The notes under the pieces: model-generated | Database searches by the model: none | The model's input: the letters and a program-made list of their open reading frames with translations, nothing else | Told to the model about the DNA's origin: nothing | In this document: positions 1 to 46,939 of the stretch, piece by piece | Layout of the letters: the number at the start of each line of letters is the position of its first letter | How positions within the stretch are numbered: position 1 is the first letter of the stretch | Translations under genes and position numbers: made by a program | NCBI GenBank assembly: GCA_026936335.1 | Contig: JAPMXV010000067.1 | Coordinates: forward strand, 1-64,000 | Direction: 5' to 3' | Length of the DNA: 64,000 bases | From: Mantamonas sphyraenae STR306 | Lineage: Eukaryota > Protista > CRuMs

Positions 1-221
1 CCTAACCCTACCCTAACCCTAACCCTAACCCTAACCCTAACCCTAACCCTAACCCTAACCCTAACCCTAACCCTAACCCTAACCTAACCCTAACCCTAAC
101 CCTAACCCTAACCCTAACCCTAACCCTAACCCTAACCCTAACCCTAACCCTAACCCTAACCCTAACCCTAACCCTAACCCTAACCCTAACCCTAACCCTA
201 ACCCTAATCCTAATCCTAACC
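1..221 (-). repeat. Telomeric repeat (CCCTAA)n / (TTAGGG)n, chromosome end
   Basis: About 36 tandem CCCTAA units from base 1, with a few single-base deletions. Degenerate CCTAAT variants at about 203-216 lead into C-rich subtelomeric DNA. Confidence 0.99.
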
Positions 222-864
222 CTTCACCCCTCCTCCACCACTAACTTCTACCTCTGTTGTTTCTTCACCGCGCTCCCACTATCCCTCAGAACCATTTCAT
301 CCCACCAATACCCATCCAAGGCCCATCCAGTGTCATCGAGCCCCCCTTCCCCGTCCGCGATATCTCACAGTCACATGGCCAGACCATCTCCCACCCCAAG
401 TGACAAAACCACTTACTTTCGACCACTGCTACACCCATACACTGCTGCTCTACCTGTCGAAATGTACATGTGATCCATTCCGCAACCGTCCAATGAGAAA
501 GTTGCCAAAAAAGGCAAGTTTTGTCGGTCGGCCTGAGTCATGCTCAGAAAAGTGTACAGATCCTAACGTGCAATCGCATCCGTAAGCTTCTCATCCTGAC
601 GATGTTCGATCATTGATGTGATGAGTCTGGTCTAGGTCAGGTGAGTTGTGAATGTGTTTGCTGGCGGGTGGCTGAGTTGCGTGGTGACATGGGGCAGTGG
701 GCAATGGGTGGTAGTGGAAATGTCGCTGGGTTAGTGGCCGTCGTCCTGCAACGCCGCTCAGTCAGCACTGCCCATCCGCCTTCAACCAAAGTATCACCAA
801 CACCCACAACAGCCTCCACCAGTCCAACACATTCCACATACACTCCAGTATCTCCACCACCACC

Positions 865-6557: not shown

Positions 6558-7088
6558 TGTCACCCTTCTTGACGTGCAAACGCTCCCTTTCCGTCCCAGT
6601 CCCAACCCACCTCTCCCTCTGCCTCCAGTGCACCACAAACCCGTGCATGATCCTCGCTCTCCAGTAGAGCTTTCCACTTGGACTTCCTCGTGCTCATTGC
6701 GTGTTCTTTGCCCTTTGTGAGCGAGTGCGCCGCACCTTTTCCCCTTTTCTCTTCTCCCTCCATGCCCACCCTTCTCCCCTTCTTCCAATCCACCACCCAG
6801 TCCATACCCACCTTGAGGTTTCCGCGAGGATGTGACAGTTCCAAGATGTGTTGCATCCTGCTCCGCATGCCAACTCCCTACCTGCCCGTGACACCTTTCC
6901 TGCCTTCCGACCCCAACCACATCAAAAACCCTTCCATTCCTCCTGCTGACCACCTCCAATCTCCCGTTGCCTCTTCCCCAACCCGCACCCGAACCCCCAA
7001 TCCACCGGCAGCACCCTCATCAACGACTTCGCTCCCTTCCGCCCCCCCCTCCATTGAAACAACCCCAACCCCAACCCCCCCAACCTCG

Positions 7089-10000
7089 ATGAAGCCATCT
7101 CGCTTCTTCGTGACCATTTCCTTGGTCCTCTCTCTCATCGCACTTTGCGCTGCAGGTCCGTCCCCGCGTTTTCTCGACCGCCTCCCTTTTCCCAGATTCC
7201 CGTAGCCTTTCCCCTTTTCTCCCCCTTCCCACCCCCCTCACCCCTCCTCGCACCGCTCCCCTCCCCCGCCACCCTCCCCCCACCCTGCCCTCTAGACACA
7301 CCCTACACATTCCAGATGTCCGCAACGGCATCAGATGATCTCTTTGTCGATGCCGCAGTTGCCGCGGACGGGTCAGCATTTCTGGCCGGAACCACCTCTG
7401 GCGCCGTTCCTGGCCACGCCCACGCAGGCGCCAAGGATATCCTAGTTGCGCACGTCCACGCAAATGGCTCTCTCGACTGGTCGCTGCAGACTGGTACTGC
7501 CCTCGACGACGAGGCATTGGCCATTGTCCTCGACGAGCCCTCTGCAACAATCTACGTCGCCGGCTACGCCTCAGGCTCCCTTCACGCACAGCCAGGCCTC
7601 GGCGCCCAGGACGCCGTGGTCATTGCTCTCGACACAAACGGCACCACAAAATGGACGCGTCTCTACGGCTCCTCGACCGACGACCGAGCCAACGATCTTC
7701 TCCTCGTCGCTGACCGCCTCTTCCTTGCTGGCTACACATCCGGCACACCAACCCCGAACCTCGCCGATGCAAACAAAGGAGGCCATGACGGTTGGCTCAT
7801 GTCTCTCCACCTCAACGGCTCGGTCGCATGGAGTCTCCTCAAGGGCGGCTCTGGTGACGATCGTTTCGCGCGTCTCGCCTACTACCAGCCCACAGACACC
7901 ATCTACGTGAGTGCCATCACTGCCTCCACAGACGGCGACGTCGTTGGCACCGCCCTCACAACAAACTGGAAGACATGGCTCCTCCGCTTCGATCGCAACG
8001 GCACTCAGCTCCAGCAGGCCGTTTTCCAAATCGACGGCGTCCAAAACCTCGGCCAAAACGGCCTCGCCGTCCTCGACCAGGACCACGTTTTCCTTGCAGG
8101 CCACTCCCACGGCCTCCATGGCTCCGGCGCCGCCACCCCAGGCGCAAACGATTCCTTTGTCATGCGAGTCGACTCCAATATGAACCAAATCTGGCGCTCG
8201 CAATGGGGCGGCAGCGGCGACGACTTCCCGGGCCGCCTCGCCTTTGACCTCGCCCAATGGCGCCTGTGGGTCCCTTCCACATTCACAGGCCCCGTACCCA
8301 ACGCCACTCTCGCCCAGTCTGTCATTGCCCTCTTTGAGCTCCACCCAGAGACAGGCCGCCTTCTGAACGAGGCGTACCTAGGCACCTCAGCCACAGACAT
8401 GGCCTTTGGCACAATCAACACCCCCCATGGTCTGTACACGTGGGGCTCCACCACAGGCTCCCTCCCGGGCTTTGCCAATCAGGGCAACGCGGATCCGATC
8501 CTTTTCCGCTCCCGCGACACCACGCTTTGCAAGCCCGCAAAGCACTGGGGCAGACAGCCCATTCGCACAACCAACGAGGATCGTTCCTTTGCAAACACCA
8601 TCCAGTCCAACGGTGTTTTTGTTCCCGGCTTTGACTCCTCGGCAGCCCTGCCCGGCCAAACCCATGTGGGAGGCAGCGACTTTGCTGCCGTCGCCTATGA
8701 CCGCTTGGGCAACCAGCTGTGGACCTATCAATCCGGAAGCACTGCAAACGACTTTAACCTCGTCATGGAAACTGGCCCAGACGACAGCATCTACATCGGC
8801 GGCACAACCCTCGGCTCCGCTTTCTCCGCCTCCCAGGGCGGCTATGATGCTGTCGTCATCAAACTCAACGCCACCGGACATCAGCTTTGGGCCTCACAAT
8901 TTGGCGCCTCCGCCGATGACCAGATCCGTGGCATTGGCGTCGCTGCAGATGGTGCGCTCTACGTTGGCGGGTACTCAACCGGCTCCCTTTACGGCACACA
9001 CGCGGGCAGTGTCGACCTGATCCTGCGCAAACTTGACCCAACTACCGGTAACCCCATTTGGTCCACCCAGCTTGGTGGCACCGGCATGGACTATCCGGTC
9101 CGCATGTGCATCGACCAGAACCAAAACCTGTACATCGTTGGCCTGACCTCTTCGCCTTCTATCGATGGCCAGACCCATAGTGGCGGCACAAACGATGCTC
9201 TCGTCTCCGCTTTTGACAAGAACGGAACCCACATCTGGACACGCTTCATTGGTTCCACCGCCTCCGATTCGGCCGAGGGGTGCGCCGTCCTCGATGGCCT
9301 CCTCTACGTCTCCGGTCACACCCTTGGCACCCTTAACGGTCAAACAAACGCTGGAGCCAACGACATCTTTCTGGTTGCCCTTGACCCTGTCTCCGGCTCC
9401 ACTCGCTGGACCAAGCTCTACGGCGGCACCGGCGACGACCTCCCCGTAGGCCGCCTAGTCGCCTCCGACGGCTATCTCCTCCTCTCTGCCTCCTCTACAA
9501 ACTCGTTCGGTGGCTACACAAACACGGGTGACCTCGACTCCATCCATATCGCCCTTTCCCCCGTCGACGGCGCCCTCCTCTGGGTCAAGGGTATTTCAAG
9601 CTCCAACGCCGGCGCAGACACTCTCCGAGAAGCAGATCTTGCCTGCGACGGTACTATTCTCGCATCTGGCTCGACTTCTGGCGTCATTGAGCTCCCCGTC
9701 ACGGGCACCGTCGATGGCTTTGCCGCAACCACCTCCTCGGCAAATGTCCCACCCACTCTCCACGGCCTGCCTGTGCTTGTCCACAATCCGCCCACTGCGT
9801 TTGGTGCTGCCCATCCGCTCTCCATACGCGACCCAGACACCATGAACCTCCTCATGCTCGTCTCCTGCACTCCCAATTGCCAGACCTCCTTCGCCTCTGC
9901 TTCGGGCAACGCCTACGCACTTGCCCAAGCCTGGTCCGCTCTCAACCTCGGCGTTTCAGATTACTCCATCAACTCTACTCTCACCGTCGCCATCTATGAT

Positions 10001-13000
10001 GGCCACGTGTGGGCCAACTCCTCCTCCACCCTTGCGTTCGGTTTCAGTCCCAGTCTCACGGGTCTCCCGGCCACAATCGATGCTGCCGTCACCAAGCTCG
10101 GTGCAACGTATCCCTTGACCATCGGCGACTCTGGCGGTTGGAACATGACCCTCACGGCCACCTGCCATTACTGCACCTTGTCCAACACCTCCTTCACCGG
10201 CACTGCCACGCAGCTCATGGCCCTGTGGTCTGCGGTTACCGTCTCTTTCAACAACACCCGCTACAACGACACACTGAGCCTCACGCTCTCCCTTGCTTCC
10301 GCGTCTGCCACCCAGTCTAGCGCAGTCCGTGCTTGCCCTCCCACTTCCCTCTCCAGCCTCCAGATCGGCACCACTGCAAACGACTATTCGTACCACGCCA
10401 TCCAAAACAACGCTGGCGAACTCATTGTCACCATCCTCACCCAAGGGTCGTTCCCCACCTACACAAACGCAGGCGACTGGGATGTCGTCGTCCAAAAGTA
10501 CGGCACAGACGGTTCCCTCCTCTGGACACGCCAGACCGGTTCCACCGCTCAGGATAACCCATACAAGGTCGCCGTCGATGCAGCCGACAACATCTACGTC
10601 GTAGGCATTGCTGACGCCACCTTCAACGGCCAGCCCCTCACAGGCACCCGTGACGTCTTTCTCATGAAACTCGACACTCTCGGCAACACCCTCTTCACAA
10701 AGCTCTATGGCAGTGGCAGTTCCATCCCCTTTGTTGTCGCCATCACAGCAGACCAACAACGTGCTCTCATCGGTGGCAAAACGACCGGCACATTGGGAGG
10801 CGCCAACGGCGGTGCCGATGATGTCTTTGTTCTCGCTGTCAACGTCACCAACGGCGCCATCCTGTCCAGCGGTCAGGTTGCTGCTGCCGGCGCACAGTCT
10901 ACATGGGCAGGGTGCATGGATGACCACGACAACCTCTACGTCGTCGGCGGTACAGCCGCTTCCATGGACGGCCAACCATTCGCGGGGAGCAATGACGCCT
11001 TTGCTGTCAAGTTCAACGCCGCTGCACAAAAGCAGTGGGTCAAGTTGACCGGTGCAGCCGGCTCAGATCTCTTCCATGGTTGTGTTGCGCACAACGACAT
11101 GCTCTTTGTCGCCGGCAGCGAAAACGGAAACGCAATCGTGGCCATGCGCCAAGACACAGGCGCCATCCAGTGGACCACCCCGCTCATCGAAAACGCAGAC
11201 CTCGTTATTGGCATCGATGTCTCACCGGGAGGAACCATCATCGCTGCAGGACGCACCAGTGGAAGCCTGCCTGGCTTCACAAACGCTGGCTCCTCCGACT
11301 ACTATGTCCTCCACGCACTCCCAAACAACGGTTCAGTTGTGTGGTACTCCCAGTATGGCTCAAGTGGCGGTGAGACCGCGCAGGCAATGACCACCACCTG
11401 CAAACCTCAGGCTCTCGTCGCAGGTTCCACTGCGGGTGCCCTGCACGGTTCCAATGCCGGCGCTGCCGACGCCTTTGTCTCCGTCATCGATATCCCAAAC
11501 ATTGCCCCCGTTCTCACTGGTCTCTCGCAATCGATCTCCGTGCACACGACCGACCTTGGTGCCGCCCACCCCATCACCATCATGGATGACAACCGTATCC
11601 TCACCTTGACACTGTCCTGCACATCGTGCACCCTTTCCAGGACCTCTCTCGAGGGTACAGCTGCACAACTCGCCAGCCAGTGGGCACAAGTCACCTCCTC
11701 CTTCCCTGTTCCCGACACCCTAACCGTCCAGCTTTCCGACGGTCAGCTCACGACCGTCCAACACATTGCCATCGTGAACTTCTCACCCACTCTCTCTGGC
11801 CTTCCCGCCACCCTGGACTACACAGTGACAAACCTCGGCGCACTCTACCCGATCAACATCACGGACGACACCCCCCTCACCCTCACCCTCAACATCTCTT
11901 GCTCCTTCTGCACCTTGTCCAACACGTCCTTCACTGGCACTCCTGCCCAGCTCCAGGTTCTTTGGACACAGGTCACCGTAGCCTTTGCGCCTGACCATGC
12001 AAACGACACTCTCACGCTTCTTCTTTCTGATGGCTTCTCGTCAGCCCAGCAGTCTGCCTCGGTGCGCGGCGGGTGCGATTCTGCAGGCCCCAATCTCGTC
12101 ATTCAGTACGGAACCACTGCAAGTGACACGGGCTACGGTGTCGCTTTTGACGCGTACGGCAACGTCTACGTCACCGGAAACACAGCAGGCAGCCTGCCAG
12201 GTTTCACCAACGCTGGCGGCCAGGATATGTACACAATCAAGTACGACCGACACGGCGCCGTCCAGTGGCGATACCAAGTCGGCAGTGCAAACGACGATTA
12301 CGCCACCGGAGTTGCCGTCGATCTCGATGGGAATGTGTTCGTGGTGGGCTTCGCCTTTGGCTCCATTGACGGCCAAGCCTATGGAGGCTCGTACGAGATG
12401 GTCGCCTACAAACTCGACAAGGACGGCAACAAGCTGTGGACTCGCATGTACGGCAACGCCGGCACTGACCTTCTCTACCACGTTGCCGTTTCCTCCGACC
12501 TCCAGCACATCTACGTGGCCGGCCAAACAGAGTCGTTTGCACCTGGGGGTGCCGGCAGCCATGACGCCTACACCGCCAAGCTGCTCACCAGCAACGGCAA
12601 CATCGTTTGGCAACAGGTCCTCGGTGGCACCCTCGACGACACCACCACCGGATTTGCACGCGACGCCGACGAAAACCTGTACCAATGCGGCTACACAAAC
12701 TCTGCCTCCTTCGATGGCATTGCCATCATTGGCAGTTTTGACGTCTACGTGTTCAAGCGCGACAAGGACGGCAACAAGCTGTGGTCAAAGCGCTACGGCA
12801 CCACCGCAGGCGACTATTGCAAACGTCTCGACGTCCGCGCAGGACGTGTCGTCCTTTCGGCAGACATCGGCGCTGCCACGTTCAATGGTCAAAACGTCGG
12901 CGGTGCCTCTCATGGCCTGCTTGTTCTCAACGCCACTACAGGCGACATGTTGTGGTCCGACTTGCAGAGGTCCACGGCTGACACTTATGCCGAGGGCGTC

Positions 13001-16000
13001 GGCCTGACCTCCACAAACCTCATTGCGACCACTGGCGTAACCGTAGGTTCATTCCCGGGCTACAACAACGCCGGTGGAAACGATTGGTTTCTGTCCATCT
13101 ACACCCTCGACGGCACCCGCGTGGATCGTCGCCAGTTTGGCAGCACCGGCGCAGACGCACTCCGCTACATGGCCACCGGCTGCGACGGACAAATCGCAGT
13201 CTCTGGCTCTGCAGGTGCTTCCATGCTTGGACAACCTGTCATCGGTGGCGGCGACGCATTCGTGTGGACCGAGCGCGTCAACATTGCGCCGACTCTCACG
13301 AATCTGCCCGCGCGTGTTCTCGCCTCCACACCGCTGTATGGCTCCCAGCAGCCGCTGACGATTCATGACTACGAAGACGACGTGATCCAGTTTACTGTGT
13401 CGTGCACCCGTTGCAATGTGAACGGTACGGGGACGCCGTCGGTGACTCTGAGCGGACGCGCAGCGGAGCTCAACGCCGCTTGGCTTACCATGAGCGTGAC
13501 CTTTGACGCCTCGTATGCCAACGACACGGTGACATGGACGGTTGCAGACGCATGGCACACGACCAGCTCGCGCCGTCAGGTGGAGGCGTGCACGTACCCG
13601 CGTGTGCAGCGCGTAGCCCACTTTGGTGGCTCTGGCAACGACAACGGTGAAAGTGTGACGGTGGACAGGTTTGGCAACATTTACGTGGGATCGACCACGA
13701 CGGGTTCGCTCGGTTCCGCCAACGCCGGTGGTTGGGACGCGTATGCGCGCAAGATGGATTATCTTGGCAACGCGCTGTGGACCAAGCAGTGGGGCTCGGC
13801 AGGCACCGAACACGTGTACAGTGTGGTGGTGGACCTGGACGAGAATGTGTACCTTGGCGGTACCACCACCACGACCTTGGTCGGCACACATCTGGGCGGA
13901 AACGACGGCTTCCTGATCAAACTCGACAAGAACGGAAACCAGCTGTGGGCGAAGCAGGTGGGCTCCACTGGAAGCGACGACCTTCGTGCACTGCTCATTG
14001 ACCCTGATGGAAAGCATTTCTACGCCGTGGGTCTGTCGGCAAGCACCACGTGGACTGGGCGCACAGGGTACGGAAGCCACGATTTCGTGTGGGTCAAGTA
14101 CACCACCAGCGATTGTGCATTTGTGGTGGGTGCTCAGGGAGGCGGTGCTGCGGATGATTGGATGCGCGGCGCCGCTTTGGATGAGCACGGCAACGTGTAC
14201 ATGTCCGGTTACACGACGGCCAGCGTGAATGGCCAGCCGTACGCAGGCAGCAACGACTTTTTGACCATCAAGTTTGACCGCGACGGAAACGTGGTGTGGA
14301 CACGTATGTTTGGTGGCACCGGATCAGATGTTGTGCATCGCATGACCTACCACAAGGGCATGGTGTTTGTGGACGGATACGTGAACAGCGACGTCAACGG
14401 CGTGCAGCGTATCGGTGGGCAGGACGCAGCCGTCGTGGCCTACAACGCCACCACGGGTGACCTGTTGTGGAACAACGTGTTTGGCACCCATGCCCTGGAC
14501 TACTCGCACGGCGTGGCCGTCACCTCTGGCGGTGTGCTTGTGGCTGCTGGTCTCACGCAGGGCTACACGCCGTACAACGACTACGGTACGTCCAACGACG
14601 TGTTTTACGCGCTGATCGAAGCGACCACGGGACGTGTGCTGAAGTATGTGCAGCAGGCGCTTGCTGGCGACGACTACCCGCGTCACGCGGTGTGCAACTG
14701 CCACGACCAGGTGGTTATCTCGGGTGGCTCTGGCAGCTCGTGGCCCGATGGATACACCAATCAGGGTAGTTACGACCTGTTTGTGTGGGTGGCCGACGCA
14801 AATGCGCCGCCAGAGGTGTCGGGCCTCCCGAACAAGATCGAAGCGTCGTTGGGATCCTGGAACGCGGCTGCCTCGCCGCTGACCATCGTCGACGTGGACA
14901 CGTCTGTGCTCAGCATGAACGTGTCCTGTGCGTACTGCAACGTGAACGGCACCGGAGTGTTGCTGCAAACCAGTGGCACTCCCGCGCAGCTCATGGCGTT
15001 GTGGAAGACGCTGACGTTTACTCTGGACGCAACACGTGACAACGACACCCTGTCGGTGTCGCTGAACGACGGGTTTACGACCGCTCGCGTGCATGTGCCC
15101 GTTGTGGCGTGCTTGGGTCCGCGCTCCACCCTGGATGCAGTCATTTTGCAAACCAGTGCGGACGACCGCGCTTGGGGATCGAATGTGGACAGGCAGAACA
15201 ACCTGTACATTGCGTCTTCGACCAGTGGGGCGCTGGCTGGATCGGCCATTGGTGATTGGGATGCGTACGTGCGCAAGATGGACCGCAACGGCGTCACCCT
15301 GTGGCAGACACAGTTTGGCACGACCTCCACCGACTATGGGTACAGCATCGACACCGACTCGTTGGGTAACATGTATGTGGGTGGAGCGACATCGGGATCG
15401 CTGTTCCATGCCAACTTTGGCGGACAGGACGCCTTTATGGTCAAGTTCGATGTGAATGGCAACGTGATGTGGCAGAAGCAGTACGGCTCTGCGAGCACTG
15501 ACGACTTCCGTGCCGATGCAGTGGTCACCCCTGACGGCAAGTTTGTCTACACTGCCGGGTACACGGCGTCATCGTTCCACGGGGACACCGCCCTGGGCAG
15601 CAACGACTTCCTGATTGTCAAGGTGGACACAGAAACGGGCAACTTGGTGTGGTCGCGCCAGTGTGGTGGCAGCGGAGATGACGTTGCACACGGCCTGACG
15701 ATGGACGACGAGGGCAACATCTACGTGGTCGGTTACACATCCAGCAACCCGTTCAACGGCGTGGCTACCAACGGAGGCTACGATTATGGCATTGTCAAGT
15801 ACTCTCCAGACGGGGCCATCATCTGGAGTGCTACGGTGGGCTCGACCACGACAGACTACGGATACCGAGTGGCGTACGACAACGGCCGCGTGTTTGTCAA
15901 TGGTGTGGTCAATGGCGCCGTCAACGGTGTACCGCTTATTGGCGGACAGGACAACATGGTGGTGGCACTCAACGCAAGTACGGGTGCGCTGCTGTGGAAC

Positions 16001-19000
16001 AAGATGTTGGGTACGACAACCACCGACGAAGGTTGGGGCGTGGCCGTGGCTCCATCGGGTCTCGTGGGCGTGTTTGGCGACGTGGGCGGCACTCTGACAG
16101 GTGTAAACAACCCCAACGGAGGCCAGGACGCATACTATGCCCTTCTGCACCCGGTTACGGGTGAGCTGCTGTACGAGTTCCAGTACGCAGACAACACGGG
16201 GACGCTCCTTCCGCGCGCTGCGAGCATGAACTGTTTCAGTCAGATGTTCATGACGGGCGCCACCACGGGCAACTTTGCTGGAGTGGCCAACCAAGGCAGC
16301 TACCAGGCCTTTGGATGGATGCGCGAAGCAAACGCCCCGCCGCAGATCAGCGGCCTGCCGACAAGTTTTGCCAGCAGCATTGCGCAGGTTGGCACCACGT
16401 ACCCGCTCCTTATCAAGGACTTCGAAGACGCGGATATGAACATGACGGTGGTGTGTGCACATTGCAACGTGAACGGCACGGGCAGCACGACGCTGGTTGT
16501 GCGCGGAAAGGCTGCACAGCTGATGAGCGCCTGGTCGACCATCAGCGTGGTGTTTTCCAACGACTACGCTAACGACTCGCTGACAGTCAGTGTCAACGAT
16601 GGCTTCAACACGGTCAGTGACTCGTCGTTGATCATTTCGTGTTTCCTGCCCAAGCCCGAGCCGCGCTACATTCAGTTCGGCACAAGCTCGGACGACCGTG
16701 CATACTCCAGCACAGTGGATCGCGAAGGCAACCTGATCATTGCGGCGCACACTACGGGGGCTCTTGCCACAGCCAATGCTGGCGGATGGGACAATTACAT
16801 TCGCAAGTACGATCCGACAGGCACGCAGGTGGCGTGGACCATCCAGAGGGGTGGTACGGGCACAGAAGCCATCCACGAGGTGACCACAGACGCCGCTGGC
16901 AACATTTATTGGGTTGGATACACCAACGGGGCGTTCCCGGGTTTCGCTCATGCGGGAAGCAACGATTTCCTGATGGGAAAGGTGAGCCCGACCGGCCAGT
17001 GGGTGTGGACTCGCCAGATGGGCACGGCCGCAAACGAAGTGCTGCATGGAGTGGGCATGTCGCCCGACGATGAGCACATGTACGTGTTTGGGTACTCCTC
17101 GGGAACAATTGGCGGTGCCAACGCCGGTTCAGAGGACCTGTATCTGGGCAAGTACAAGGCATCGGACGGTGCCACCGTGTGGCAACGCCAATTGGGAGTG
17201 AGCGCCTCGGACATCTTTTTGAACGGTGTTGTGGACGAGAACGAATTTGTGTACGGCGTGGGCAGGGTCACGGGTGCGCTGAACGGCCAAACGTTTGCCG
17301 GAGGAAGCTACGATGTGGTCCTTGTCAAGTATGACAAGGATGGCAACCACCAGTACACAAGGCTGTGGGGTGGTGCCAGCAACGAGGAGGCATACAGGGT
17401 TACGCTCGTGCCTGGAGGCCGCTTGGCTGTTGCGGGGTACACCGACAGCAACCCGTTTGCAGGCCAGGCGTCGCTGGGCGGCCGTGATGGCTTTGTGGTG
17501 ATGGTCAACAGGACCACTGGTGACACTGCATGGGTAAGGATGGTTGGTACGGACAAGACCGACACCCTGCACGCCATCTCCTCGCTTCCGAACGGCCTGG
17601 TGGCTGCGGGTGGTGACTCGGGTGGTGACGTTTCACTCGGAAACCAAGCTGGAGGCAATGGTAACGACGCTGCTGTGTTTGTGCTGGACGCAGACACGGG
17701 CACGCTGCAGTTTGCACGTCAGCTGTCGCTGTACGGCACAACCTTTTTCACGGATGCAACGTCCACGTGTCACAACCAAGTGTTCTTTACGGGACGTGCA
17801 AACGTGGCATTGCCTGGAAACACGGCGAGTGGAAGCTGGGACCCCATGGGCTGGCTGATGGACGTGGACGTGCCGCCCACGGTGACGGGCATGCCTGCAA
17901 CCATGGCCAACACAGAGACGTTTGTGACCAGCAACTACCCGCTGACGATCAGCGACTATGAAAACTACGGCACCATGCAACTGACGGTGTCGTGTGGCAA
18001 CTGCAACGTGAACGGTACCGGATTGCAGAGCAAGACGATGCAAGGCAACTCGGCACAGCTCATGGCCGCCTGGTTGGGCATGAGCATTACCTTTGACACG
18101 AGCTTGGGCAACGACACACTGTACGCACGCGTGTTTGACGGAGTCAACACGGTGGCGGCGCAGACGGCGGTGACCGGATGCAGCGCGGTCAAACCTGCCG
18201 ATTGGACGCTGCAGTTTGGCACGGGATCGAACGAAGACGCATACTCTAGCACGTGGGACCACGAGGGCAACCTATTGGTCGGAGCCAACACGTACGGATC
18301 TCTGTATGCAACAATCCAAGGAGGAAATGACTGGTATGTGGCCAAGTTCTCGCCGCAGGGCACCCTTCTGTGGGGCCGCCAGTACGGTACCAGCGCAAAC
18401 GACGCGGTGCATGACATCGATGTGGACGATCATTCCAACGTGTATGCTGGTGGTTACACCGGGGGTACCCTGTTTGACACCGCGTTGGGAAGCAACGACT
18501 TTGCAGCGGTCAAGTTTGATCGCGATGGCAACATGATTTGGAGGAAGCAGTGGGGTTCGTCAGGCAACGACGTGCTGCATGGTGTGGCCGTGAGCACGGA
18601 CAACACACATGTGTTTATGGCGGGCTACACAGGCGGGTCGTTGGGTGCGGCCAACGCAGGCGGAGTCGACTATGTGGTCATGAAGATGACCGCACACGAC
18701 GGCGCAGTGCTGTGGTACAGGCAAGTCGGTAGCGCCGGCAGCGACCATGTCATTGACATGGACATCGATGCCATGGACAACCTCTACTTGATAGGCTACG
18801 GCCAGGGTTCGATCCATGGCCAACCGTACCAGGGCAGCGAGGAATCCGCCGTGCTGTCGTACGATAAGGATGGCAACCACAGGTGGACGCGCATGATTGG
18901 TACGAGTGGGTCGGATACGTTCTACCGCGGTCAACAGAGCAACGGAGTGTTGTACGCCACTGGTCACATCCGTGCATCTGTGAGTGGCCAACCGTACTCA

Positions 19001-22000
19001 GGCGGTGCCTCGGACGTGTTTGTCGTGGCATACAACGCCACAGATGGCACAGAGTTGTTTGTGCGCCTGGCGGGCACGGACAACGAGGATTGGGCACATG
19101 GATTGACGGTGACGCCGACCGGCCTCGTGGTGGTCGGCGGCGACACGCGTGGATCGCTCGCGGGCTTTGAAAGTCCCAACACCAATTTGGACATGGCGTA
19201 CTGGGTGTGGGACACCCAAGGCAACTTCCAGTACCATCATCAGTGGATCGATGTGACATCCAACTCGCAAACGCGCAACGCAGAGTCGGATTGCCACAGC
19301 CGAGTGGCGTTTACAGGCTACGCCGCCTCCGCCATGGCAGGACAGACCGCTTATGGAGGCAATGATGCCGCCGTGCGTGTGACCAGTGTGGACGTGCCAC
19401 CCACGGTGACCGGCTTGCCGCTGACGTTTGACGAGGCGTCCATGGCGGCGGGTAGGTATCCGCTGGCCATTGCAGACTTTGAGGACTTTGCCACCACGCA
19501 ACTGGTTGTGTCGTGTGAAAGCTGCAATGTGAACGGCACGGGCAGCAACCGCGTGGTTGTGCAGGGCAAGGTGGCCCACTTGATGGCCGCGTGGATGACC
19601 ATGCGCGTGGATGTGGACACTGCGACGACCAGCAACGACACCCTTGTGGTGAGTGTGTTTGATGGCGTCAACACAGTGACCCAGCGCATGGCACTGCTCG
19701 TGTGTTTGGACAACAGCGGCATGCGCAACTTTCTGTCACAGTACGGCACCAGTGGCACCGACAACGGCTACTCGGTCACCGTGGATCGCGAAGGTGGCAT
19801 CCTCATTGGTTCCCACACATATGGTGCGCTGGGTGCGGCCAATGCAGGCAGTGCAGACGCATACGTGCGCAAGTACAGCCGCACGGGCGAGATGCTGTGG
19901 ACGTGGCAACAGGGAGGCGCCGGAAACGACGTCGTCCATGCAGTTGCCACAGACAACGATCTCAACGTGTACGCTGTTGGATATGCAACCGCTGCCTTCC
20001 CCGGCTGCTCGTATGTCGGTTCGAATGACTTTTTGATTGTCAAGTTGAACCAGCATGGTGTGCGCCAGTGGGCCGTCATGTATGGTAGCACGGGCAACGA
20101 TGTGCTGCATGGCGTGGTGGTGACCAAGGATGGTTCGGCCATTGTGGTGAGCGGCTACACCGACGGCAACGTCGCCGGAACGAATCTGGGTGGCATGGAT
20201 TGGCCTGTGATGAAGCTGCGCACGTCGGACGGCGCCAAGGTGTGGCAGAGGCAGATCGGTACAGCCAACCATGAGCACTCGCACTGGTCGGTGATCGACG
20301 AGGAAGACAATGTGTACATCTTTGGCAACTCGCAGGGCGCCTTTGGCGGCAAGACCAACGCTGGAGCATACGACATGGCCGTTGCCAAGTTGGACACCAA
20401 CGGCAACACGGTGTGGACGTGGTTGGCAGGTTCGAACCTTGATGACTCGCTGAGTCGTGGCTACTACAGCAACGGCATGGTGTACGGAGCGGGTTACTCG
20501 CAAGGCACAGGTGTGTTGGGCGACCAGGTGCAACCTGGAGCGGCCGACATGGCTGTGGTCAAGATCAACGCCACGACAGGCGTTGCATCGTGGCTCCGCC
20601 TCCTGGGTGGACCCAGCAATGACTACGCGCACGCCGTGGTGGTGAACAAGTACGGCACTGTTCTGGCGGGCGAATTGTCTACCAGCCGCATGGACGGTTT
20701 CTCTGCGCCCAACAGTGAAGACATGGCCTACTACCTTCTGGATGCCGATGGAAACAAGCGCTACGAGTACATGGATGTGCTGCCGGGTATCCACAAGATC
20801 AGGACGGCACACATGCTGTGCGGTGACAACAACCTGGCCGTTGCTGCTGGTGACACCACCACGGCTCTGCCTGGCCAATCGTTGGCTGGCGGCTGGGACG
20901 CGTACGTGCGCACGTTGGCGGTGGATGCGCCGCCCATCCTGCGAGGCCTGCCCAGTTCGGTGTCGTCCACGCAGAGTGCGTTTGGACAGGCACACACCCT
21001 GCGCATCGATGATCCAGACAGCCCTGTGCTGAACATGACGGTGTCGTGCACGCAGTGTGTGCTGAATGGTACCGGCGGGACGAGTTTGACCGTGACGGGC
21101 AGCCGCCTGCAGCTCGAGGCTGCGTGGAAGACGCTGAGTGCAACCTTTTCGCAGGATCCGGCTGTGCATGAGGCAGTGGTCGTGACTGTGAGCGATTTGT
21201 ACAGCAGCCGCGACCATGTGATGTCTGTGCTTGCGTGTGCAGGCGTGCAGCCGACGTGGAGCCAACAGATCGGCACGACGAGCAGCGACTACCTGCGTGG
21301 CATGGCACGCGATGGCTTTGGGAACCTGTATGTGACTGGTATGGCCACGGCGGCGTTCCCGGGCAAGGCGTTTGGTGGCACACGCGATGTGATTCTCATC
21401 AAGTACAACTCGACGGGTGCGGAGCAGTGGGTGGTGCAGGACAACCACGCGGGCCTGCAGGATCCGTACGAGGTGTGGGCCGACTCGCGTGGCTATGTGT
21501 ACGTCACGGGTCTCACGCAGCAGTCGTACCACGGCCAGGCGTTTGCAGGCAGCAACGATGTGTTTGTGAACAAGTATCGTGCGTCGGACGGCGTGCGTCT
21601 GTGGACAGGTGTGATTGGTTCCACATCCAGCGATGTGCCGCAGAGCATCTGGGGCTCTGCTGACGGAAAGGCCGTGTATGTTGCAGGCTACACGAGTGGC
21701 GCTCTGAGTGGAGAAGGCAATGCCGGTAGCCAGGATGGCTTCTTGGCCAAGTTTGGCACGGTGAACGGCATCCCCGAGTGGGTGCGTCGTCAGGGCACGG
21801 CTGGCGCGGAAACGACGTTCAGTGTGACTGTGGACGAGGATGCAAACGCGTATGCAACCGGTAGGACAAGTGGTGCCCTGTATGGAAGCAACGCGGGTCT
21901 GAACGACGTGTATGTGCTCAAGGTGAACCCGGACGGATTGCCATTGTGGACGGTGCAGTTTGGCGGCACGGGAGCCGAACCTCTGGATGACATTCCGGTG

Positions 22001-25000
22001 CTGGTGCACAAGGGCGTGGCCTTTGTGGCTGGCAGCACAGGAAGCACAACCCTGAATGGACAGACGGCAACCAACGGTGCGCCGTTTGTGGTGGCGCTGG
22101 ATGCAAACACGGGCGCGCAGCTGTGGACGTCGATTGTGGCTACGGTGACAAGCACGACGTACGTCAACGGCGTGTCGATGACACCCAGTGGACACCTGGT
22201 GGTGGGCGGCTACACGCAGGGCACGATGAATGGCCAGGTCAGCGCAGGATCCAACGATCTGTGGTACGCCGTGTTGGACACGGCGCAGAACGGCAGTGTG
22301 CTTGTGGTGAAGCAGTTTGGCACGAGCGGCGCTGATGTGGCGCAAGGGCTGGCCGTGACATGCGCAGGCGAGGTTGTGCTGTCAGGCTACACGACGGGTG
22401 TGTTTGGTGAGGCAAACGCGGGCGGCTACGACTTTTTCGTGGTGAAGCGCGATCTGGACAGGCCGCCCGAGGTGGCACTGAGCACGACACGTTTCGAGGT
22501 GACGAGTGGCGACACAGTGGTGCTGGGCGAACGCCTGAGTGCCAATGTGACCCAGCTCACGTTTGGTGTGGAGGTGCCACGTGTGTATCTGCAGGTGTCG
22601 TGTGTGGAGTGCACCATGTGGATGCCTGCGGTGACCACGCTGGTCAACGGCAGTGTGATGGTGGTGGCCAACAGCACGGGCATGTCCACAGTGGCCGAGG
22701 TGACGGCCAACGTGACGCAGGTCCAAGCATGGCTGCGTAGCCTGCACGTGCGCTTCAACGGCAGCAACGCAGACGAACCAATCACCCTGAAGCTCAACAA
22801 CGTTGGCAACACGGGCGCCAACGACGTGCGCGAGTACGTGGTGAATGTCGACGTGCTGTGCGGTGACGTGACGCCCTTTTTGGTGCGCCAAGGCACTGCA
22901 TCGAACGAGGTGGCCCAGGCTGTGGCTGTCGATCGCTACGGCGATGTGGCAATGGCCGGATACTCGGACGCCGCTCTGGCCGGAGCCCATTCGGGCTCGG
23001 CCGATGCGTTTGTGCGCGTGTGGAACAGCCAGGGCAGCGGCGGCTGGCAGGTGCAGTTTGGCACCGCCGGCGCCGATGTGGCCAACGACGTGGTGTATCT
23101 GTCAGACGGCGGTGTGTTGGTGGCAGGCTATGTCAGCGGCGCCCTGTTTGGTCAGACGTACAACGGCGGCGGACGCGATGCCTTTGTGGCGCGCTATTCG
23201 TCGACGGGTGCCCAGATGTGGTTCCGTCTGGTGGGCAGCAGTGGCAACGACGAGGCCAGCAGCATGCAATTGAGCACCTCGCAGGAGTATGTCTACGTGG
23301 TGGGCTACGCAATGGGTGCGGTCAACGGAGCCGCCAACAACGGCGGCATGGATGTGCTTGCATTCAAGATGCGCGTGTCGAACGGCAGCGTGGAATGGAC
23401 AAGCCAGCATGGCGCAGGCGGCAACGACGTGGCCGAACGTGTGTCTCTGACCATGGATGGCACCACGCTGATGGTGGCTGGATCCACCACGGCCGAGGTG
23501 CATGGCCAGCCATACCAGGGCGGAAGCAACGACGCCCTGGTGATGGCCCTGCGCTCGAGCGACGGCACACGTGTGTGGACTCGCACATACGGTGGCGACA
23601 GCGCCGATGTGGTGACCCTTGGACGCGCCGTGGTGGTGCAGGACCTGTTTGTGGTGTCCGGATCCACCGACTCGAGTGTGTTCCTGGGCATGGATGCACT
23701 TGGCAACGCCGATGCGTTTGTGGTCGCCGTGCATGTAGCCAACGGCAACGTGGCGTGGAAGCAACGCGTGGGCACGGCTGCACTGGACCAGGCCATGAGC
23801 ATTGCGCTGATGTCCAACAATGTGCTCGTGGTCGCTGCGGTGACCCAGGGTGCACTGCCCGGCCAGTCTTCACAGGGTGGCCAGGACATTGCATACCTTT
23901 ACATGGATGCGTTCAGTGGCCAGCTTCTGCGCACGGAGCAGGTGGGTGGTTCGGGCTTGGACACCGTTCAGGATGTCGCCGTGACTTGCACAGGCGATGT
24001 GGCCTCGGTGGGCATGACCCAGTCCACCAATGGTATGTTTGCAGGCACAAGTGCGTCTGGAAACAACGACGTCTTTGCAGCAGTGCGCACAGGCTACCGC
24101 TCGCCGCCTTCGGTGGTGGGTCTGACAGACGCGCGTCTGTCGGTGTTCCCCGACCAGGTGCTGCATGTGGGTGTCACACTCCCCGTCAGCATCCACGGCG
24201 TTTCGCTGCCTGGTGACGGTGTGGATGTGTCGTGCACTGCGTGTGTCCTCACACTTGCACCTGCTGCCAACGCCGTGGCCGGTGTGTCTGTGAGTGGCAA
24301 TGGCACGACGCGTGTGACGCTGCGTCTGACGGGTGCGGCCCAGAACGGCTCTGCACTGACTGCCGTGTGGTCTCACCTGCATGTCATGGTGGCCCTGGGT
24401 GCAGGTGGCCCTGTGGATGCCCTTGTGGTGGACACTGTGAGCAGCACCTCGAGTCTGGCAGCAGGTGAAACACGTCGCTACACTGTACCTCTGGCGGTGC
24501 CCTGTGCACCATTGGAGCCGTTTAGGCGCCGTGTGGGCACGTCCAACGGCGAGTGGACGGAGCGCTTGCGCCTTGGCCACGATGGGTCGTTGTACACGGC
24601 CGGTGGCACGTCGCTGAACGCAGCAGATGCGCTGATGCGCAAGTTCAACGCATCCGGAGTGCAGGTGTGGGAGAACCAGTTTGTGAACGCGGGTGGCTCT
24701 TGGGGCCACTACGCCGTTCCTGACAACCGCGGCTCGGTGTTTGTATCGTCCAACTTTATCGGCAACTACGGCTCGCTGGTGAACAGCGGTGGCACGGACA
24801 CACTCATGGCCAAGCTGGACGACACGAACGGCAAGGTGGAGTGGGCGCGTCTGTTGGGCTCGTCGGTGGGCGAGGCATGGAACCTGGTGGAGCTGTCTGA
24901 CGACGGCCAGTACCTGTACCTGGTGGTGGCCAGGGACGACAGCCGCAACCTGGAGGTATCCAAGTTCCACGCAGCGTCGGGTGAACTTGTGTGGTCGCAA

Positions 25001-28000
25001 CTCCATGCTGGCAACGGCACGGTTGCAGGACACGGTCTGCGTGTGGCACCGAATGGTGACGTGGTGGCAGGTGGCTTCCTGATTGGCGCCATGTTTGGCA
25101 CCAGCTCGCAGCCGGGCAACGTGCAGGACGCATGGGTGGCACGTTTCAACGGAAGCAACGGCGACCTGGTGTGGTCGCACGTGTTTGGCGGCTACGGCAC
25201 ATACGACTGGGTACACGACGTGGTGTTCCTCACCGACGAAACCAGCAACGACGTGGTGATCACAGGCATGACAAACGGCAACGTGACGCTGCCCGCATCG
25301 ATGGCCGGTGCGCCTGTCACGGCATGGCCGGTGATCCACGGCGGTGACGACGGCTTTGTGATGCGTCTGGGCGCCATGGATGGCAAGCCCAAGTGGGTGA
25401 CGGTGCTGGACCAGAGCGCAGCGAACGAGCTGGGCCACGGTGTGGCTGTGGCGTTGGGCGACGACGGTCTGTTGTACACATCGGGTCGCTCGCAAGATGA
25501 TCTTGCCCTGTGGCGCCTGACGCGCGAGGGCACCCTGGTGGACTCGTTGACGCTGGGTGGACCCACTGTGGAGTGGAGCAAGGGTGTGGTGCGCAGCTGC
25601 AACGGCCTGGTCTACGTGTCAGGATCCACGCACGGCGCGTTCCCGGGAATCGACACACCGCACGCCGGTGGCGAGGACATGGTGCTGCTGGCGTTGCAGA
25701 CCGCCACCTTTGGCCCTGTGGTAAACTTTACGCAGCCGAGCACATCGCTGACGTTGCTGGAAGGTGTGGACGCCACCATCAAAGCGACGGCGAGCGACCT
25801 TGACAGGAGCATCTTTTACGGCGTGCCGCGTCCGTATGCGGTGAATGTGACGTGCGAAGCGTGCACGTTGCATGCGCTGTGGATGCCTGGAGCCAACCAG
25901 ATGATGGAAGGCAATGGGACAAGCACGCTGCGCTTCATGGCGCACGAGGCCGAGTTTAACGCCTGGATGGGCGGCGCCGGTGTGCGCTACGTGCAGTGGA
26001 ACGAGTCCAATGTGGCGGTGGACACGGTGCGCATTGGCATGCGCCAGTACGACGGCGTGGCCAGTGTTGCGTCGCTGCCGGTGGTGGTGACACTTGTCAA
26101 CGATCCGGTCCATGTGCTCACGGGTCTGCCTTCGGGGCTGTACAACGTGAGCGAAGAGAGCGCGCTTCCGTTTGGCATTTCCGTCTCCGATGTGGATGCG
26201 GTGCTGGGCGACCTGAGCGTGCATGCCGAGGCCTCGCTGGGTACACTGCGTGTGTTTGCTGGCGTGACCTTTGCCGGCGCACAGGTGAGCGGAAACGACA
26301 CACACGTGCTGAACTTCAACGGCACGCTGGCGCAGGTGAACGCTGCCCTGCTCAGCATGGAGTACCTCGCAGGCAGTCTGCCCGGATTGGACATTGTGCG
26401 TGTCGTTGTGAGCGACAACGGCGCAGGTGGCATCGGTGAGGTGTCCACACGTACATTTGTGTTCAACGTGACCATCCCCAACTCGGGCAACGACCCCGTG
26501 CGCTTTGTGCACCTGCCGCCGTCCTGGTTCACCGTGGCTGAGGACAGCAGCTTCCACGTGCCCTTTATGCGCGTGGCAGACCCCGATGCCGCGGCTGGTG
26601 TGCTCACCCTCAACGTGAGTGCCACGCTGGGCACGGTGGAGCTGGCAGCCGGTGCCGCGGGCAACGGATCCGTGGTGGTGAACAACGGCACGCTGACGCA
26701 GATCAACGCGTTGCTGACAACACTCGTGTACCATGCGCCTGTGCATCACGTGGGTGGCGACACCGTGACTGTGGTGGTGAACGACAACGGCTTCACCGGC
26801 GGCCCTGCCACACAGGCCGTGTTTGTGCTCACTGTCAACGTCACCGCCGTGAACGACCCCGTGCACATTGTTGGCATGCCCACAGAGCTCACTGTGGACT
26901 ATTTGGACAGTGTGCACGTGGCAGGCATCTCTGTGACGGATGTGGATGCCGCACAGGTCGATGGCAACATGCGTTTGGTCATCAGTGCCACCCATGGACG
27001 CCTGTCGACGGTGTCGCATCCAGACAAGCTGCAAATCGATGTGGTGGGCACTTTGGGCTCCATCAACGCCCAGCTGGCCACCCTGCACTACGCAAGCGTC
27101 CCTGGCCTGTCCTCGGGTGTCGATCCCCTCGTCGTCAGCGTCTACGACCTGGGCAACCACGGCGCTGGACCGGCCTACTCGCGCCAGGCGGTGGTCAACG
27201 TCACCGTGGCGCCGTTTGTGCCCACGCTGACCTTTGTGGGCGCAGCCGGCGGCGACTGGAACGTCAGTGCCAACTGGGATGCCGGGCGTGTGCCCAACGC
27301 CACAGACAGTGTGCTGGTTCCCGCAAATGCCTCGGTGGTGCTTTCGCAGGCCACAGTGGCACGCGTGGACCGTGCGCTCGCTTGGGGCAACGTCACCGTG
27401 CTGTCAGGAAGCGTGCTGGAAATCGTGCGTGGCGCAGCTCTCGCAGGCGACACACACGTGCACGGCACAGGCAGCGTGGTGCAGGGTGCGTTCACTGGTG
27501 TTGCGCAGGACCCGCAACTGTGGATGAACACAGTGACACTGTCGGAAGGCGGTGGAGTGAGCGGAAACACGACGCAGCTGCGTGTGGTGAACATCCTGAC
27601 AAGCAACAACGGCGTGTTGAGCGTCGGTGTGAGCACACAGGTGCTGAATGCACGCGTGCCTGCGGGCGGTGTGCTTCAAGTGAACACCGACGTGCAGGTG
27701 ACGGGTGTGTTGGACATGGCATCCAACGCATGGCTGCGTGGAAACGGTGTGACGACGCTGACAGGCGCCGATCTCGGCGGCTCGATGCACACGCTGTCCC
27801 AGGCCCGTGTGAGCAGCCATGTGCATGCCTTTGGCTCCATGGCTGTGCACAACCTGGTGTGTGACAGCAACGCCATCGTGTCCATCTACGGCGAGGCCTC
27901 GCTGTACGGCTCGGTCAACGGCACCGCGGGTGCATGCGAGCTGCGTGTGATGGCAGGAGCCAACGTGACATTGGATGGTGTCGCCACCATGAACAGCAAG

Positions 28001-28429
28001 GTGACCATCATGCACGGCGCAACACTCAAGGGCAACCCTGCCGCACAACCGCCGTTGCGTGCATTCGCAGCGTGGCACGTGGAGGGACAGACGTCGCGTC
28101 TGCGTTTGCATGTGACTGCTTCCACAGTGACGTGGCTCAGCAACGCCGTCCTCGACGACCTCGTCGTGGCCCAGGGTGGCGAGGTGCGCGTCCACAACAC
28201 TGGCGCTCGCTTCGATGCCGTACACATCGGCCAGGGCGGTACTCTGCGTGTCCATGGATCCATGCAAGTGGGTACGTTGACGCTGCTCAGTGGCACGTGG
28301 GAGGTTCTGGGCTCTGTCAAGATGCTGGGCGCCCTGGACCTGCGCGACGGCAGCTTCCTGCGCCATGCAAATGCCACCGTCTATCTGGACACCCCAGTGT
28401 CCTTTGGAGTGGATGCTCAAGGCAAGTGA
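7089..28429 (+). CDS. Giant secreted protein, ~7066 aa; join(7089..7155,7296..28429); signal peptide, 12 SBBP-type seven-bladed beta-propellers, about 16 Ig/cadherin-like domains, C-terminal beta-solenoid
   Basis: The 21-kb ORF is uninterrupted. Exon 1 encodes the signal peptide MKPSRFFVTISLVLSLIALCAA; donor G|GTCCGT at 7156 and acceptor CTAG at 7295 join in phase (G+AC=Asp). Blade motif WxxQxGTxxxDxxxxVAVDxxGNxYVxGxTxGxxxGxxNAGxxDxFxxKxDxxG matches the SBBP repeat family. Linker domains read PPxVxGLP…SCxxC…NDT. Cadherin-like VNDP / SDVDA / GTLAQVNAAL / VSDNG domains lie at about 26.1-27.2 kb. N-x-S/T sequons are abundant. Confidence 0.9.
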
Positions 28430-28499: not shown

Positions 28500-31400
28500 C
28501 TACGACACCCACGGACTCCTGCACAGGGGACACTCGCTCTTGCCCGCACTGCTGAACCACTTGACCAAACACCCGGCGTGGAAGCGCATGTTCTTGCACA
28601 CCCTGCACTGCAGCTTGGGCATCTTGTTGGAAGCATCCATGACAGCGTAGCAAATGGGGCAAGGCTCCACTCCCGCAAACCGCTTGTCGACGCCACTCTT
28701 CCACAGCAGGATTGCGTCCAGTGCACTTCCGTCCCTGAATGCAACCAATGTGTGCATGGCCAACACCCACTGGCTGACCATCGCTTCGCTCATCCCCTTG
28801 TTCCCTCCCTTCACCGCACACACCTTGGCCACCTCCAGAGGGTACGCCTTGGGCAACTCCACACGCACCTGCAGCATCATTTCATCCACGCAGTACTCTG
28901 CTGCCACGGCTCCCCCACCTTCCACCCACACACGAAACTCTTCCGCCTCCGCCTCGTGATCCCGCGCGTACGCTCGCACCTGTTCCATCTCCGCTTCAAT
29001 CAACCCCTCGCTCAGACCGCTCTCCTCCACCACTCGCCGCACCTGCGCCACCACGCCCTTGTCTGCGTATCGCAACCACTCACGCAACTGCGCCGGCAGT
29101 CGCTGCACCGTCCAGCAGAACAGCCGTCCTGCCGTCCTTGCCAATGACTCGCTCCGCACCATCTCTTGCACCCAATCTCGCTTTTCCAGCCACTCGCTGC
29201 CTGTAGAGGCGCCTTGCACGCCCAGAAACGGCACGATGCACGACAACGCGTTGCCCAAAACACCCTCCTTGCTCACGTACTCCACCAGCTCGTTGCGAAC
29301 GTCCACCTCTTCCCAGCACGCCTCCAGCATCTCCAGCACCACACACCACCCACACATCATCCCAAACCGCTCACTGTGCAGCCGTTCGTAGTAGTCCACC
29401 GCATCTTCGATCTCCTCGTCTTCCATCACAATCGTCTCAAACACACGCGTGTCCTCCACCACTGCCGGCACCCTTCCCACAAATCCGTCCATGTTCCTCA
29501 TCACTGTCACGAAGCCACACTTTTGCACCCATTCTCCCTCCTCCTCCAAAAGACCGTACACGCGATCCACGTCCTCCGCGCCGCACACTCTGTCCACCAC
29601 TCCTTCCGTCAGCGCACTCACCACAACCCGTCCGCTCTCACGCCGCACCTCTCGCGACCCTTCCCCTTCCAGCAGCCGCGTCATGCACGCCGCACACACA
29701 CGCTCCACAACCTCCTGCTCCAATCCGCCAAGAGCCCTCTGCACACACCGAAGCACATCCACACGCTCTTCCACGCCCCAACGCTCCACCACTGCTCCCA
29801 ACACACTCCACTCGTGCGCGCCCACGTGTGCCTTTTGTGTGGGCAGCAACACACGCTCCCAAAACACGCACAGGCCATCCGCCACGCTCGCCTCCTCCAG
29901 CGCCTGCCTGCCCACCAGGGCACAAACTTGCTTCCCGACATCCAAAACGTCTTCGTCCCGCAAGTCCCCGTCCTCTTCACCCTCGTTCGACGACGCAAAG
30001 CAGTGGCTGAGCATCGACAACGCTCGGCCCATGTTGCTATTGCCCGCCTCAAACGCTTCCAAGCAGTGCAGCCGGAACTTGAGCATTTCCTGGCTCGCAG
30101 ACACATACTTGGCCAGTGTTGGCATGATAAACGCCACCAACTGTCGCCCCGTTTCACTTTCAAACGACCACACCGCCGGATGGCCCGTGACCTGGCCAAA
30201 CACGCCCTTCGCCGCCATCAGTCGCTCCATCGAGCTTTCTTCCCCTCCAAACACCGCGTCTTCCAACACCAGCTTCAGCGCCCCGGCTCCCACCTCCCCT
30301 TCCTCCACCGCCCAGTTTACACACGTTTCCACCAGCCTCTCCTGTACGCTTGCGGACATCGTGCGCAGCAGCGGCACCATCTCGCCGCGCCAAAACTCCA
30401 CCAATGGCTCCAAGAGGTACGTTTGGCCCAGTGGCGAGCGCAGGGCGCGACGCAGAAACGTACCTGCCCCCGCATCCGACCCGCTGCGCGACATTTGCAC
30501 CACTTTGTACAGATCGCCGGTCCACTGTTGCAACACCGTCACCACCGCCGCCTCCTCCGCTTCCTCGTTGCCCATGCCCACCTCCTCCAGAACCATTTTC
30601 ACACTGAACAGCATGCGCAGCACCACGCGACCATCCCGCTCCACTCCCCGTCTCGCTTCCACCATCTTTGCCGCCACACGCATGGCGCTTTCACCGATGC
30701 CCATCACCACCTCGTGCACAAGGGTCTCGTTGTACAGTCTGCTCGTGTCCTCAATGCTTTCGCACACCACAGCCACCTGCTCGTCCACAAACCGGCCGTC
30801 GCTGCGGTTCACAAAATCGCTCCCCACTCGACGCCACACTTCCCGTGCCACTTTGCCCACAGGCGACTGCGTCACGTACCAAATGCTTGCTGCTTGCGCC
30901 TCAAAGTCCTTGATGGATCGCAGCGAGTCCAGCAGCGAGTCCATGCTCAGCGTCGCGTGTTCCAGAATCTCCGCCTTGTCCATCCTTTGTCCACCCGCAC
31001 GGCCCTTGCGCTTGCGTCCACCTCCGTCTGCGCTGCTGATCATCTGGGTTTCCATCTGCAGTGCAAACACCTTGCGCGCCACATGCCACACCGTCTCTAC
31101 GTCCACATGGTGTGCTGCCAACAAGGCCTCGGCCACAGAAAACACGCGCGCCGTCTCTTCGCTCACCACAAACCCCTCGCTCGTGCCGCTCACTGTGTCC
31201 AGCGAACTCTCCACAGCCTCCACCACCCTCTGCAGCAGCGACTCCTCCACCACGTGTGCACCTGCAGGTGCACGCACACGGAGCACAGCCTCCACCACAC
31301 TCATCTCCTCGGCTCCCAGAGCATCCTCCACAAGTGCTTGCACGTGTGGCAGATCCTTCGCACTCATATGCTCCATCGCTGGCGCTGCACCCACAAATTC

Positions 31401-33224: not shown

Positions 33225-33275
33225 TTCCTGTTTACTTTTCTTCTTCGGAGAGCGGTCGTTGCCCCGCACGGCGCA

Positions 33276-46907: not shown

Positions 46908-46939
<32 letters not shown>

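Follow-up and report, generated by a model that had tools for sequence, protein, structure and literature searches.

The window analysed here, the first 64,000 nucleotides of a contig (C67; JAPMXV010000067.1) of the Mantamonas sphyraenae STR306 genome, begins with a telomere repeat array and carries a giant gene on its forward strand between an LRR array and a Listerin/LTN1-like RING ligase, followed by ELYS and TEP1-like genes (Table 1). Mantamonas sphyraenae, a member of the CRuMs lineage, is a gliding marine flagellate that feeds on bacteria and was obtained from barracuda skin. Its assembly has been described as 25.06 Mb in 78 primary contigs (PMC10492846), and the version used here contains 25,061,354 bases in 78 contigs, with 59% GC and TTAGGG telomeres. 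A bacterial contaminant contig is ruled out by the telomere, an intron, the LTN1-, ELYS- and TEP1-like neighbours and a GC3 for the giant gene (0.73) that resembles that of neighbouring genes (0.70–0.76).

Table 1. Features in the 64,000-nucleotide window (position 1 is its first letter)
Feature	Position	Strand	Basis or remark
Telomere repeat array	1–223		
First gene from the telomere, 1,057 aa	1256–4429	+	no convincing Pfam match
84-nt LRR array adjoining the giant gene (repeat at 4959–6460)	4446–6959	−	
Giant gene	7089–28429	+	2 exons
Exon 1, signal peptide, 22 aa hydrophobic	7089–7155	+	67 nt, phase 1 end
Intron, 140 nt, GT-AG, pyrimidine-rich	7156–7295	+	sequence only; alternative in-frame acceptor 7205
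Propeller P1, joined directly to P2 without a spacer	7298–8524	+	profile/alignment
Propeller P2 and Ig spacers S1, S2	8546–10333	+	alignment, profile
Propeller P3 and Ig spacers S3, S4	10337–12073	+	alignment, profile
Propeller P4 and spacer S5	12077–13588	+	modelled 7-bladed propeller and beta-sandwich, pLDDT 93
Propellers P5–P10 (starts 13592, 15113, 16643, 18182, 19706, 21239), one Ig spacer each (S6–S11)	13592–22858	+	period ~1.53 kb
Propellers P11, P12 (starts 22862, 24506), one spacer each (S12, S13)	22862–26092	+	alignment, profile
Three bacterial cadherin-like (Cadherin_4/Big_9-related) domains, NDP-type	26093–27214	+	homology searches
Right-handed beta-helix with G8/amnionless-like cap, W-N-W-P start, then stop	27215–28429	+	structure model, profile search
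15-kb block, likely a recent gene-conversion tract	13286–28367	+	97–98% identical to C25 192754–176161
Listerin/LTN1-like RING ligase, apparently single-exon	28500–33269	−	by inspection
ELYS nucleoporin, apparently single-exon	36992–40387	−	
TROVE + WD40 protein, 2,948 aa, TEP1-like (telomerase/vault component)	43895–52741	−	

As a sequence-only reading of this DNA had proposed, a short signal exon precedes a separate long open reading frame, and the joined exons encode 7,066 aa with one stop codon and no internal stop (computed mature mass ~735 kDa). Exon 2 is a single 21.1-kb exon (7296–28429); the exons were joined for numbering and profile building only, and database searches used exon 2. 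When all upstream ATG/GT/AG combinations are scanned, the ATG at 7089 gives the best signal peptide. The donor at 7156 is in frame with acceptors at both 7295 and 7205, and use of 7295 puts the propeller directly behind the signal. The earlier placement of the intron gains support from paralogs on contigs C25 and C30, in which signal-peptide exons of 67 and 79 nt also end in phase 1 at AG/GT, but use of the acceptor at 7205 would likewise leave the frame open. The stop codon is genuine because the LTN1-like gene on the opposite strand ends only 70 bp away and because the C25 paralog shares the stop position, despite divergence of the last 60 nt; the same observations exclude a gene that runs past 28429 to a membrane-anchor exon. 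Apart from the signal peptide, no segment of the protein exceeds a hydrophobicity of 1.62, in agreement with the previous failure to see a transmembrane or GPI signal, which supports prediction of a secreted protein without a membrane anchor.

The encoded protein combines 12 seven-bladed SBBP propellers with 16 Ig domains and ends in a beta-helix. The propellers have lengths of 386–411 aa and pairwise identities of 20–39%. SBBP (PF06739) was the Pfam family expected, and it is matched at 201 and 86 bits against a cut-off of 20.5. Seven four-stranded blades are present in an AlphaFold2 model of P4 and its spacer (28 strands, an N-terminal closing strand and then a beta-sandwich; pLDDT 93, pTM 0.90) and are assigned to the other modules by alignment. 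Among solved structures, the CylK propeller is nearest to P4 (E 4e-26, rmsd 1.9 Å, 29% identity), well ahead of the next fold at E 5e-10, and CylK is also matched by sequence at E 7e-56. The number and starting positions of the modules in the sequence-only reading agree with these results at all twelve points, and its view of the modules as propellers agrees with the P4 model.

From the second module onward the propellers are followed by one or two spacers with an SCxxC-like motif, as had been noted; CxxC occurs in 12 of the 13 spacers, with CxxxC in the first. The three cadherin-like domains reported near the C terminus are present, but they are not separate from the spacers. Profile searches with the 13 spacers recover the three terminal domains and vice versa (E 7e-8 to 7e-6 in one direction, 2e-5 and weaker in the other), and because each set finds the other, the two sets are, by profile comparison, a single family that would form a 16-domain stalk. 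These domains match ten Cadherin_4/Big_9 proteins in phmmer searches (E 1e-39 to 2e-6) and their alignment has D-x-D and N-D-x-P motifs, although they fall below the Pfam gathering cut-off (best Big_9 score 19.1 versus 23.6 bits). A relationship to bacterial Cadherin_4/Big_9 repeats is indicated by these similarities. Related cadherin-like domains also make up one oomycete cluster in the Atlas, so the cadherin-like part is not unique to the Mantamonas lineage.

Potential glycosylation sites and cysteines are distributed unevenly over this architecture. N-glycan sequons are in slight excess in the whole protein (76 versus 65 expected), with enrichment on the Ig domains (45 versus 20) and depletion on the propellers (23 versus 41), neither of which was reached in any of 1,000 shuffles. 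Of 114 Asn residues on top faces, only 2 are in sequons. A Cys just ahead of each of P2–P12 is matched by a blade-7 Cys at a spacing of 355–376 aa, and the blade-7 Cys occurs in 20 of 21 Mantamonas modules versus 1 of 53 prokaryotic modules. From the topology, we infer a disulfide clasp at blade 7. The suggestion that the protein is adapted to eukaryotic secretion is supported by eukaryote-type changes that include the signal exon with its conserved phase-1 intron, added cysteines and stalk glycan sites, but not by total sequon number, which is only slightly above chance.

The beta-solenoid that had been predicted to end the protein begins at a W-N-W-P motif, and the last 404 aa are modelled with moderate confidence as a right-handed beta-helix (pLDDT 70, pTM 0.47). 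The model is closest to autotransporter adhesin passengers (Z 15.9–11.7), while a Foldseek search with it gave no match at E ≤ 0.001. G8 (PF10162) matches the tail cap at 24.2 bits versus a cut-off of 22.9, with only positions 2–30 of 124 aligned, and scores 21.4 bits on the C25 copy. The cap also matches Amnionless weakly (E 0.008) and many bacterial secreted proteins. Substitutions relative to C25 are clustered at window positions 27700–27800 and 28368–28429 (aa ~6925–6964 and the last 25 aa; dS 0.17), which suggests patchwork conversion or a variable surface.

The gene belongs to a family whose genes are spread over many contigs and are mostly not subtelomeric. A genome search with the first propeller gives 198 matches, distributed over more than 25 contigs, in open frames of up to 10,900 aa; members occur on C26, C2, C15, C58, C31 and others, and those on C25, C30 and C1 were read in detail. 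The C25 paralog has ~21–22 propellers and the same tail, whereas the C30 paralog has 11 propellers and a diverged tail. On C1 (58986–89740), long fibre repeats form the N terminus, ~16 propellers follow and the protein ends in a Peptidase_S74 chaperone (62.9 bits), an arrangement that suggests a trimeric self-cleaving fibre. Compared with C25, the C1 paralog also has a frame break of 1 bp near 78400, either real or a polishing error, and C25:208059–208204 has a frame break by small indels relative to the homologous C1 block. Paralogs lie at 25–45, 59–90 and 176–211 kb on contigs of 309–493 kb, so the subtelomeric setting described previously applies to this gene, which lies beside the telomere repeat, but is contradicted as a family rule.

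About three quarters of the gene belongs to a block that differs by only 2–3% from C25 (dS 0.043, dN 0.011, dN/dS 0.25). Its 5′ junction coincides with the P4/S5 boundary, where C:G at four-fold sites shifts from 708:126 to 983:1209 (p 4e-95); C25 composition at such sites is uniform over the matching point, and the window is C-rich again after the block. For the flip in skew at 13.3 kb, this homology junction is a better explanation than a replication origin. The last 20 codons are homologous to those of C25 and diverged. Given the 97–98% identity, the join at a module boundary and the foreign codon skew, the block is most simply explained as recent gene conversion, in which a donor of C25 type likely replaced three quarters of the resident homolog. 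C25 and C1 share 16 kb at 98–99% identity with a different block order. Propeller top faces hold no significant excess of the differences between recent copies (24 of 53, p=0.11). Long near-identical repeats and the frameshift-like breaks in two paralogs could alternatively point to an assembly chimaera or a dead gene, in which the 15-kb block was misjoined or is a collapsed repeat and the locus is non-functional. This is very improbable given the sequence difference from C25 and the low dN/dS, the in-frame junctions at homologous positions, C-rich sequence on both sides and an intact 21-kb frame.

Closest relatives of the propellers are prokaryotic, which upholds the earlier view that the protein is built from prokaryote-typical parts. 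The best 120 of 826 matches (28–42% identity) are apparently single-propeller prokaryotic secreted proteins or lipoproteins, with named relatives in Myxococcota, Acidobacteria and Nitrospirota, and Atlas structural neighbours are 94–100% bacterial clusters where taxa are recorded. In quick LG+G4 trees, the Mantamonas modules all group in a single clade (SH-aLRT 98–100), which implies one origin and then deep expansion. With distant SBBPs added, the Mantamonas modules fall among long-loop SBBPs of bacteria and away from two Asgard proteins, with support of 82–90 that represents weak nesting; a Mantamonas + Asgard grouping is not rejected by an AU test based on just two Asgard rows (p=0.138). 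Giant viruses have collagen-fused propellers that are 18–25% identical and could represent another transfer route; viral contigs sought by pattern were not found. The propeller is probably of bacterial origin, and the horizontal acquisition that had been proposed is likely but unproven, given a weakly supported placement among bacterial SBBPs, an Asgard grouping that is not rejected and the existence of giant-virus relatives. Any transfer must be old because GC and GC3 equal those of neighbouring genes. No giant homolog (3,900–12,300 aa) was found among 806 candidates from a 5.8-billion protein set, a search of limited sensitivity. The architecture had been considered unlike any described eukaryotic protein, and no eukaryotic string of 12–22 SBBP propellers was found in the databases or literature searched, in which eukaryotic coverage is thin.

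All of the parts are known already, and the working principle resembles that of giant adhesins in bacteria and of surface proteins in archaea. The C-terminal propeller of CylK/BrtB (PDB 7FH6, 7RON) is likewise a seven-bladed long-loop SBBP with the same loop motifs (28–29% identity, rmsd ~2 Å over 400 residues), but CylK is a cyanobacterial enzyme with one propeller and a Ca2+ beta-roll cap, whereas the giant protein carries 12 propellers without a cap along a stalk of Ig domains and has not kept the catalytic set. CylK matches are confined to its residues ~236–660; the N-terminal Ca2+ beta-roll that supplies Arg105 is absent and Ig domains flank the propellers instead. Under an assumed blade register, the equivalent of Asp440 is not Asp in any of P2–P12 and that of Tyr473 is Tyr in 3 of 11. 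Loop Asp/Glu motifs are conserved in most blades and, by sequence comparison, may correspond to the blade-bridging Ca2+ sites of the CylK propeller (PMC8916777). Prokaryotic SBBP proteins, including Myxococcus proteins and Leptospira LipL53 (NF047494), are secreted proteins or lipoproteins with the same repeat, but they usually have one propeller in 400–700 aa and seldom have the clasp Cys. The LipL53 equivalog cut-off is missed (106–110 bits versus 400), and the signal peptide here is eukaryotic and not of lipoprotein type. Giant Ca2+-dependent bacterial adhesins (LapA, SiiE, CabD, BapP) share tandem cadherin-like/BIg extenders with D-x-D motifs, but those adhesins are mostly Ig with one head and type I secretion, whereas here heads alternate with Ig domains and the protein has predicted ER secretion and disulfides, with N-glycan sites; searches for RTX repeats or type I secretion gave no Pfam/NCBIfam match, and an N-terminal ER signal exon is present instead. 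Methanosarcina surface-layer proteins (YVTN propeller, PKD and beta-helix; PDB 1L0Q) likewise unite a propeller, Ig-like domains and a beta-helix within a single surface protein (Jing et al. 2002); their propeller (13% identity) and Ig domains are from other families, so that the likeness is an analogy only. Autotransporter passengers (Vag8, TibA, Ag43) have a right-handed beta-helix like the tail (11–16% identity), but the giant protein ends in its beta-helix and lacks their C-terminal beta-barrel translocator. Animal LRP1/megalin and cubilin are also giant extracellular strings of binding modules, with unrelated module families (YWTD/EGF and CUB), and cubilin similarly lacks its own anchor. 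The giant protein lies outside the CylK, LipL53, RTX/Bap and autotransporter families.

With slightly better than even chances, the giant protein may be a secreted, non-enzymatic, multivalent adhesive filament that belongs to the extracellular matrix or lies on the cell surface. After passage through the ER, its 16 Ig domains would form a disulfide-fixed, N-glycosylated stalk that is probably stiffened by Ca2+ in seawater. Each propeller would be entered and left at blade 7, clasped there by a disulfide, and would present a glycan-free top face. Twelve different heads could each bind weakly to varied surface polymers and jointly attach strongly to substrate, biofilm or bacterial prey, on a filament that, from typical domain sizes, would be roughly 75–130 nm long. 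The terminal beta-helix might dock on its own copies or on a membrane partner and so replace an anchor, and ectopic recombination may renew the head set through exchange of module runs between paralogs. The propeller would most likely have come from bacteria long ago, with one expansion in the Mantamonas lineage. This explanation is favoured because LipL53 has been reported to bind matrix proteins, cadherin-like extenders of bacterial adhesins are rigidified by Ca2+ and BapP joins a propeller to 12 beta-sandwiches (PMC12153261), and because of the CylK blade Ca2+, the adhesin-like tail fold, the bare propeller faces, the glycosylated stalk and a surface-gliding life. Against it, surface retention is unexplained without an anchor and the only solved homolog is an enzyme; a shared fold does not give function.

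A structural role is rather unlikely as a full account but is compatible with an adhesive filament: strings could bind one another, by Ig-Ig contacts that depend on Ca2+ and by their beta-helices, and so build a glycocalyx or gliding trail in which the propellers would act as a shield or as spacers and not as specific binders. Ag43/TibA-like tail folds self-associate, the Methanosarcina triad of folds (1L0Q is among the fold matches) occurs in a surface layer and the C1 paralog ends in a trimerisation chaperone, but top faces without glycan sites and with blade-specific polar residues suggest exposed binding sites. Enzymatic activity was considered from the same faces, since CylK active-site residues sit at variable top-face positions, P7–P9 top faces have several His and acidic residues and many beta-helices are lyases. 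A chain in which some propellers digest biofilm or prey walls by hydrolase or CylK-like chemistry is nevertheless improbable because CylK requires the missing Arg105 and no residue set is conserved across modules. It is similarly doubtful that the protein is a scavenger co-receptor of cubilin/LRP type, in which an unanchored string traps dissolved proteins or polysaccharides and is endocytosed while its beta-helix is held to a membrane partner. Cubilin is anchored by docking of beta-helix to beta-helix (PMC6283879) and the tail cap has G8 and Amnionless similarity, but this covers ~30 residues of a cap that is common in bacterial secreted proteins, amnionless is not among the fold matches of the tail model and the membrane partner is hypothetical. 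Beyond the adhesive filament itself, a possible but tentative extension is a combinatorial fibre system in which a propeller-Ig cassette is exchanged between giant genes with alternative assembly ends (a beta-helix here, fibre repeats with an S74 chaperone of phage type on C1 and membrane anchors at other loci) to give a renewable adhesive or prey-recognising repertoire. If so, a free-living, deep-branching eukaryote would have a renewable fibre repertoire built from prokaryote-type parts.

This gene and the family around it offer specific candidates, open to experiment, for the molecular basis of sticking, gliding and bacterial capture in mantamonads and related gliding flagellates. Published transcriptome contigs of up to 32 kb indicate that some giant genes are transcribed, and no more than that (PMC10492846). 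A lineage near the base of Amorphea appears to build 0.7–1.2 MDa extracellular proteins from module families that are known chiefly in prokaryotes, and not from cadherin, EGF or YWTD parts of the animal type. The propellers are natural variants of the CylK type and could be used to ask what the widespread, uncharacterised SBBP fold binds, and the 15-kb block would be a dated example of module exchange between giant genes.

The same cadherin-like domain is also abundant in other giant open frames on C27, C29, C32, C44, C28 and C8, the longest of which has 9,721 aa. At C25:105700–178900, tandem 7.5-kb units each contain an LRR gene and a 5′-truncated copy of the giant gene end, and an inverted duplication of 2.3–2.5 kb lies among them. 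The truncated copies are 93–95% identical, consist of the second and third cadherin-like domains and the beta-helix tail, and have no obvious start. The LRR array of the window is ~80% similar to the LRR genes of these units, and LRR genes adjoin both copies.
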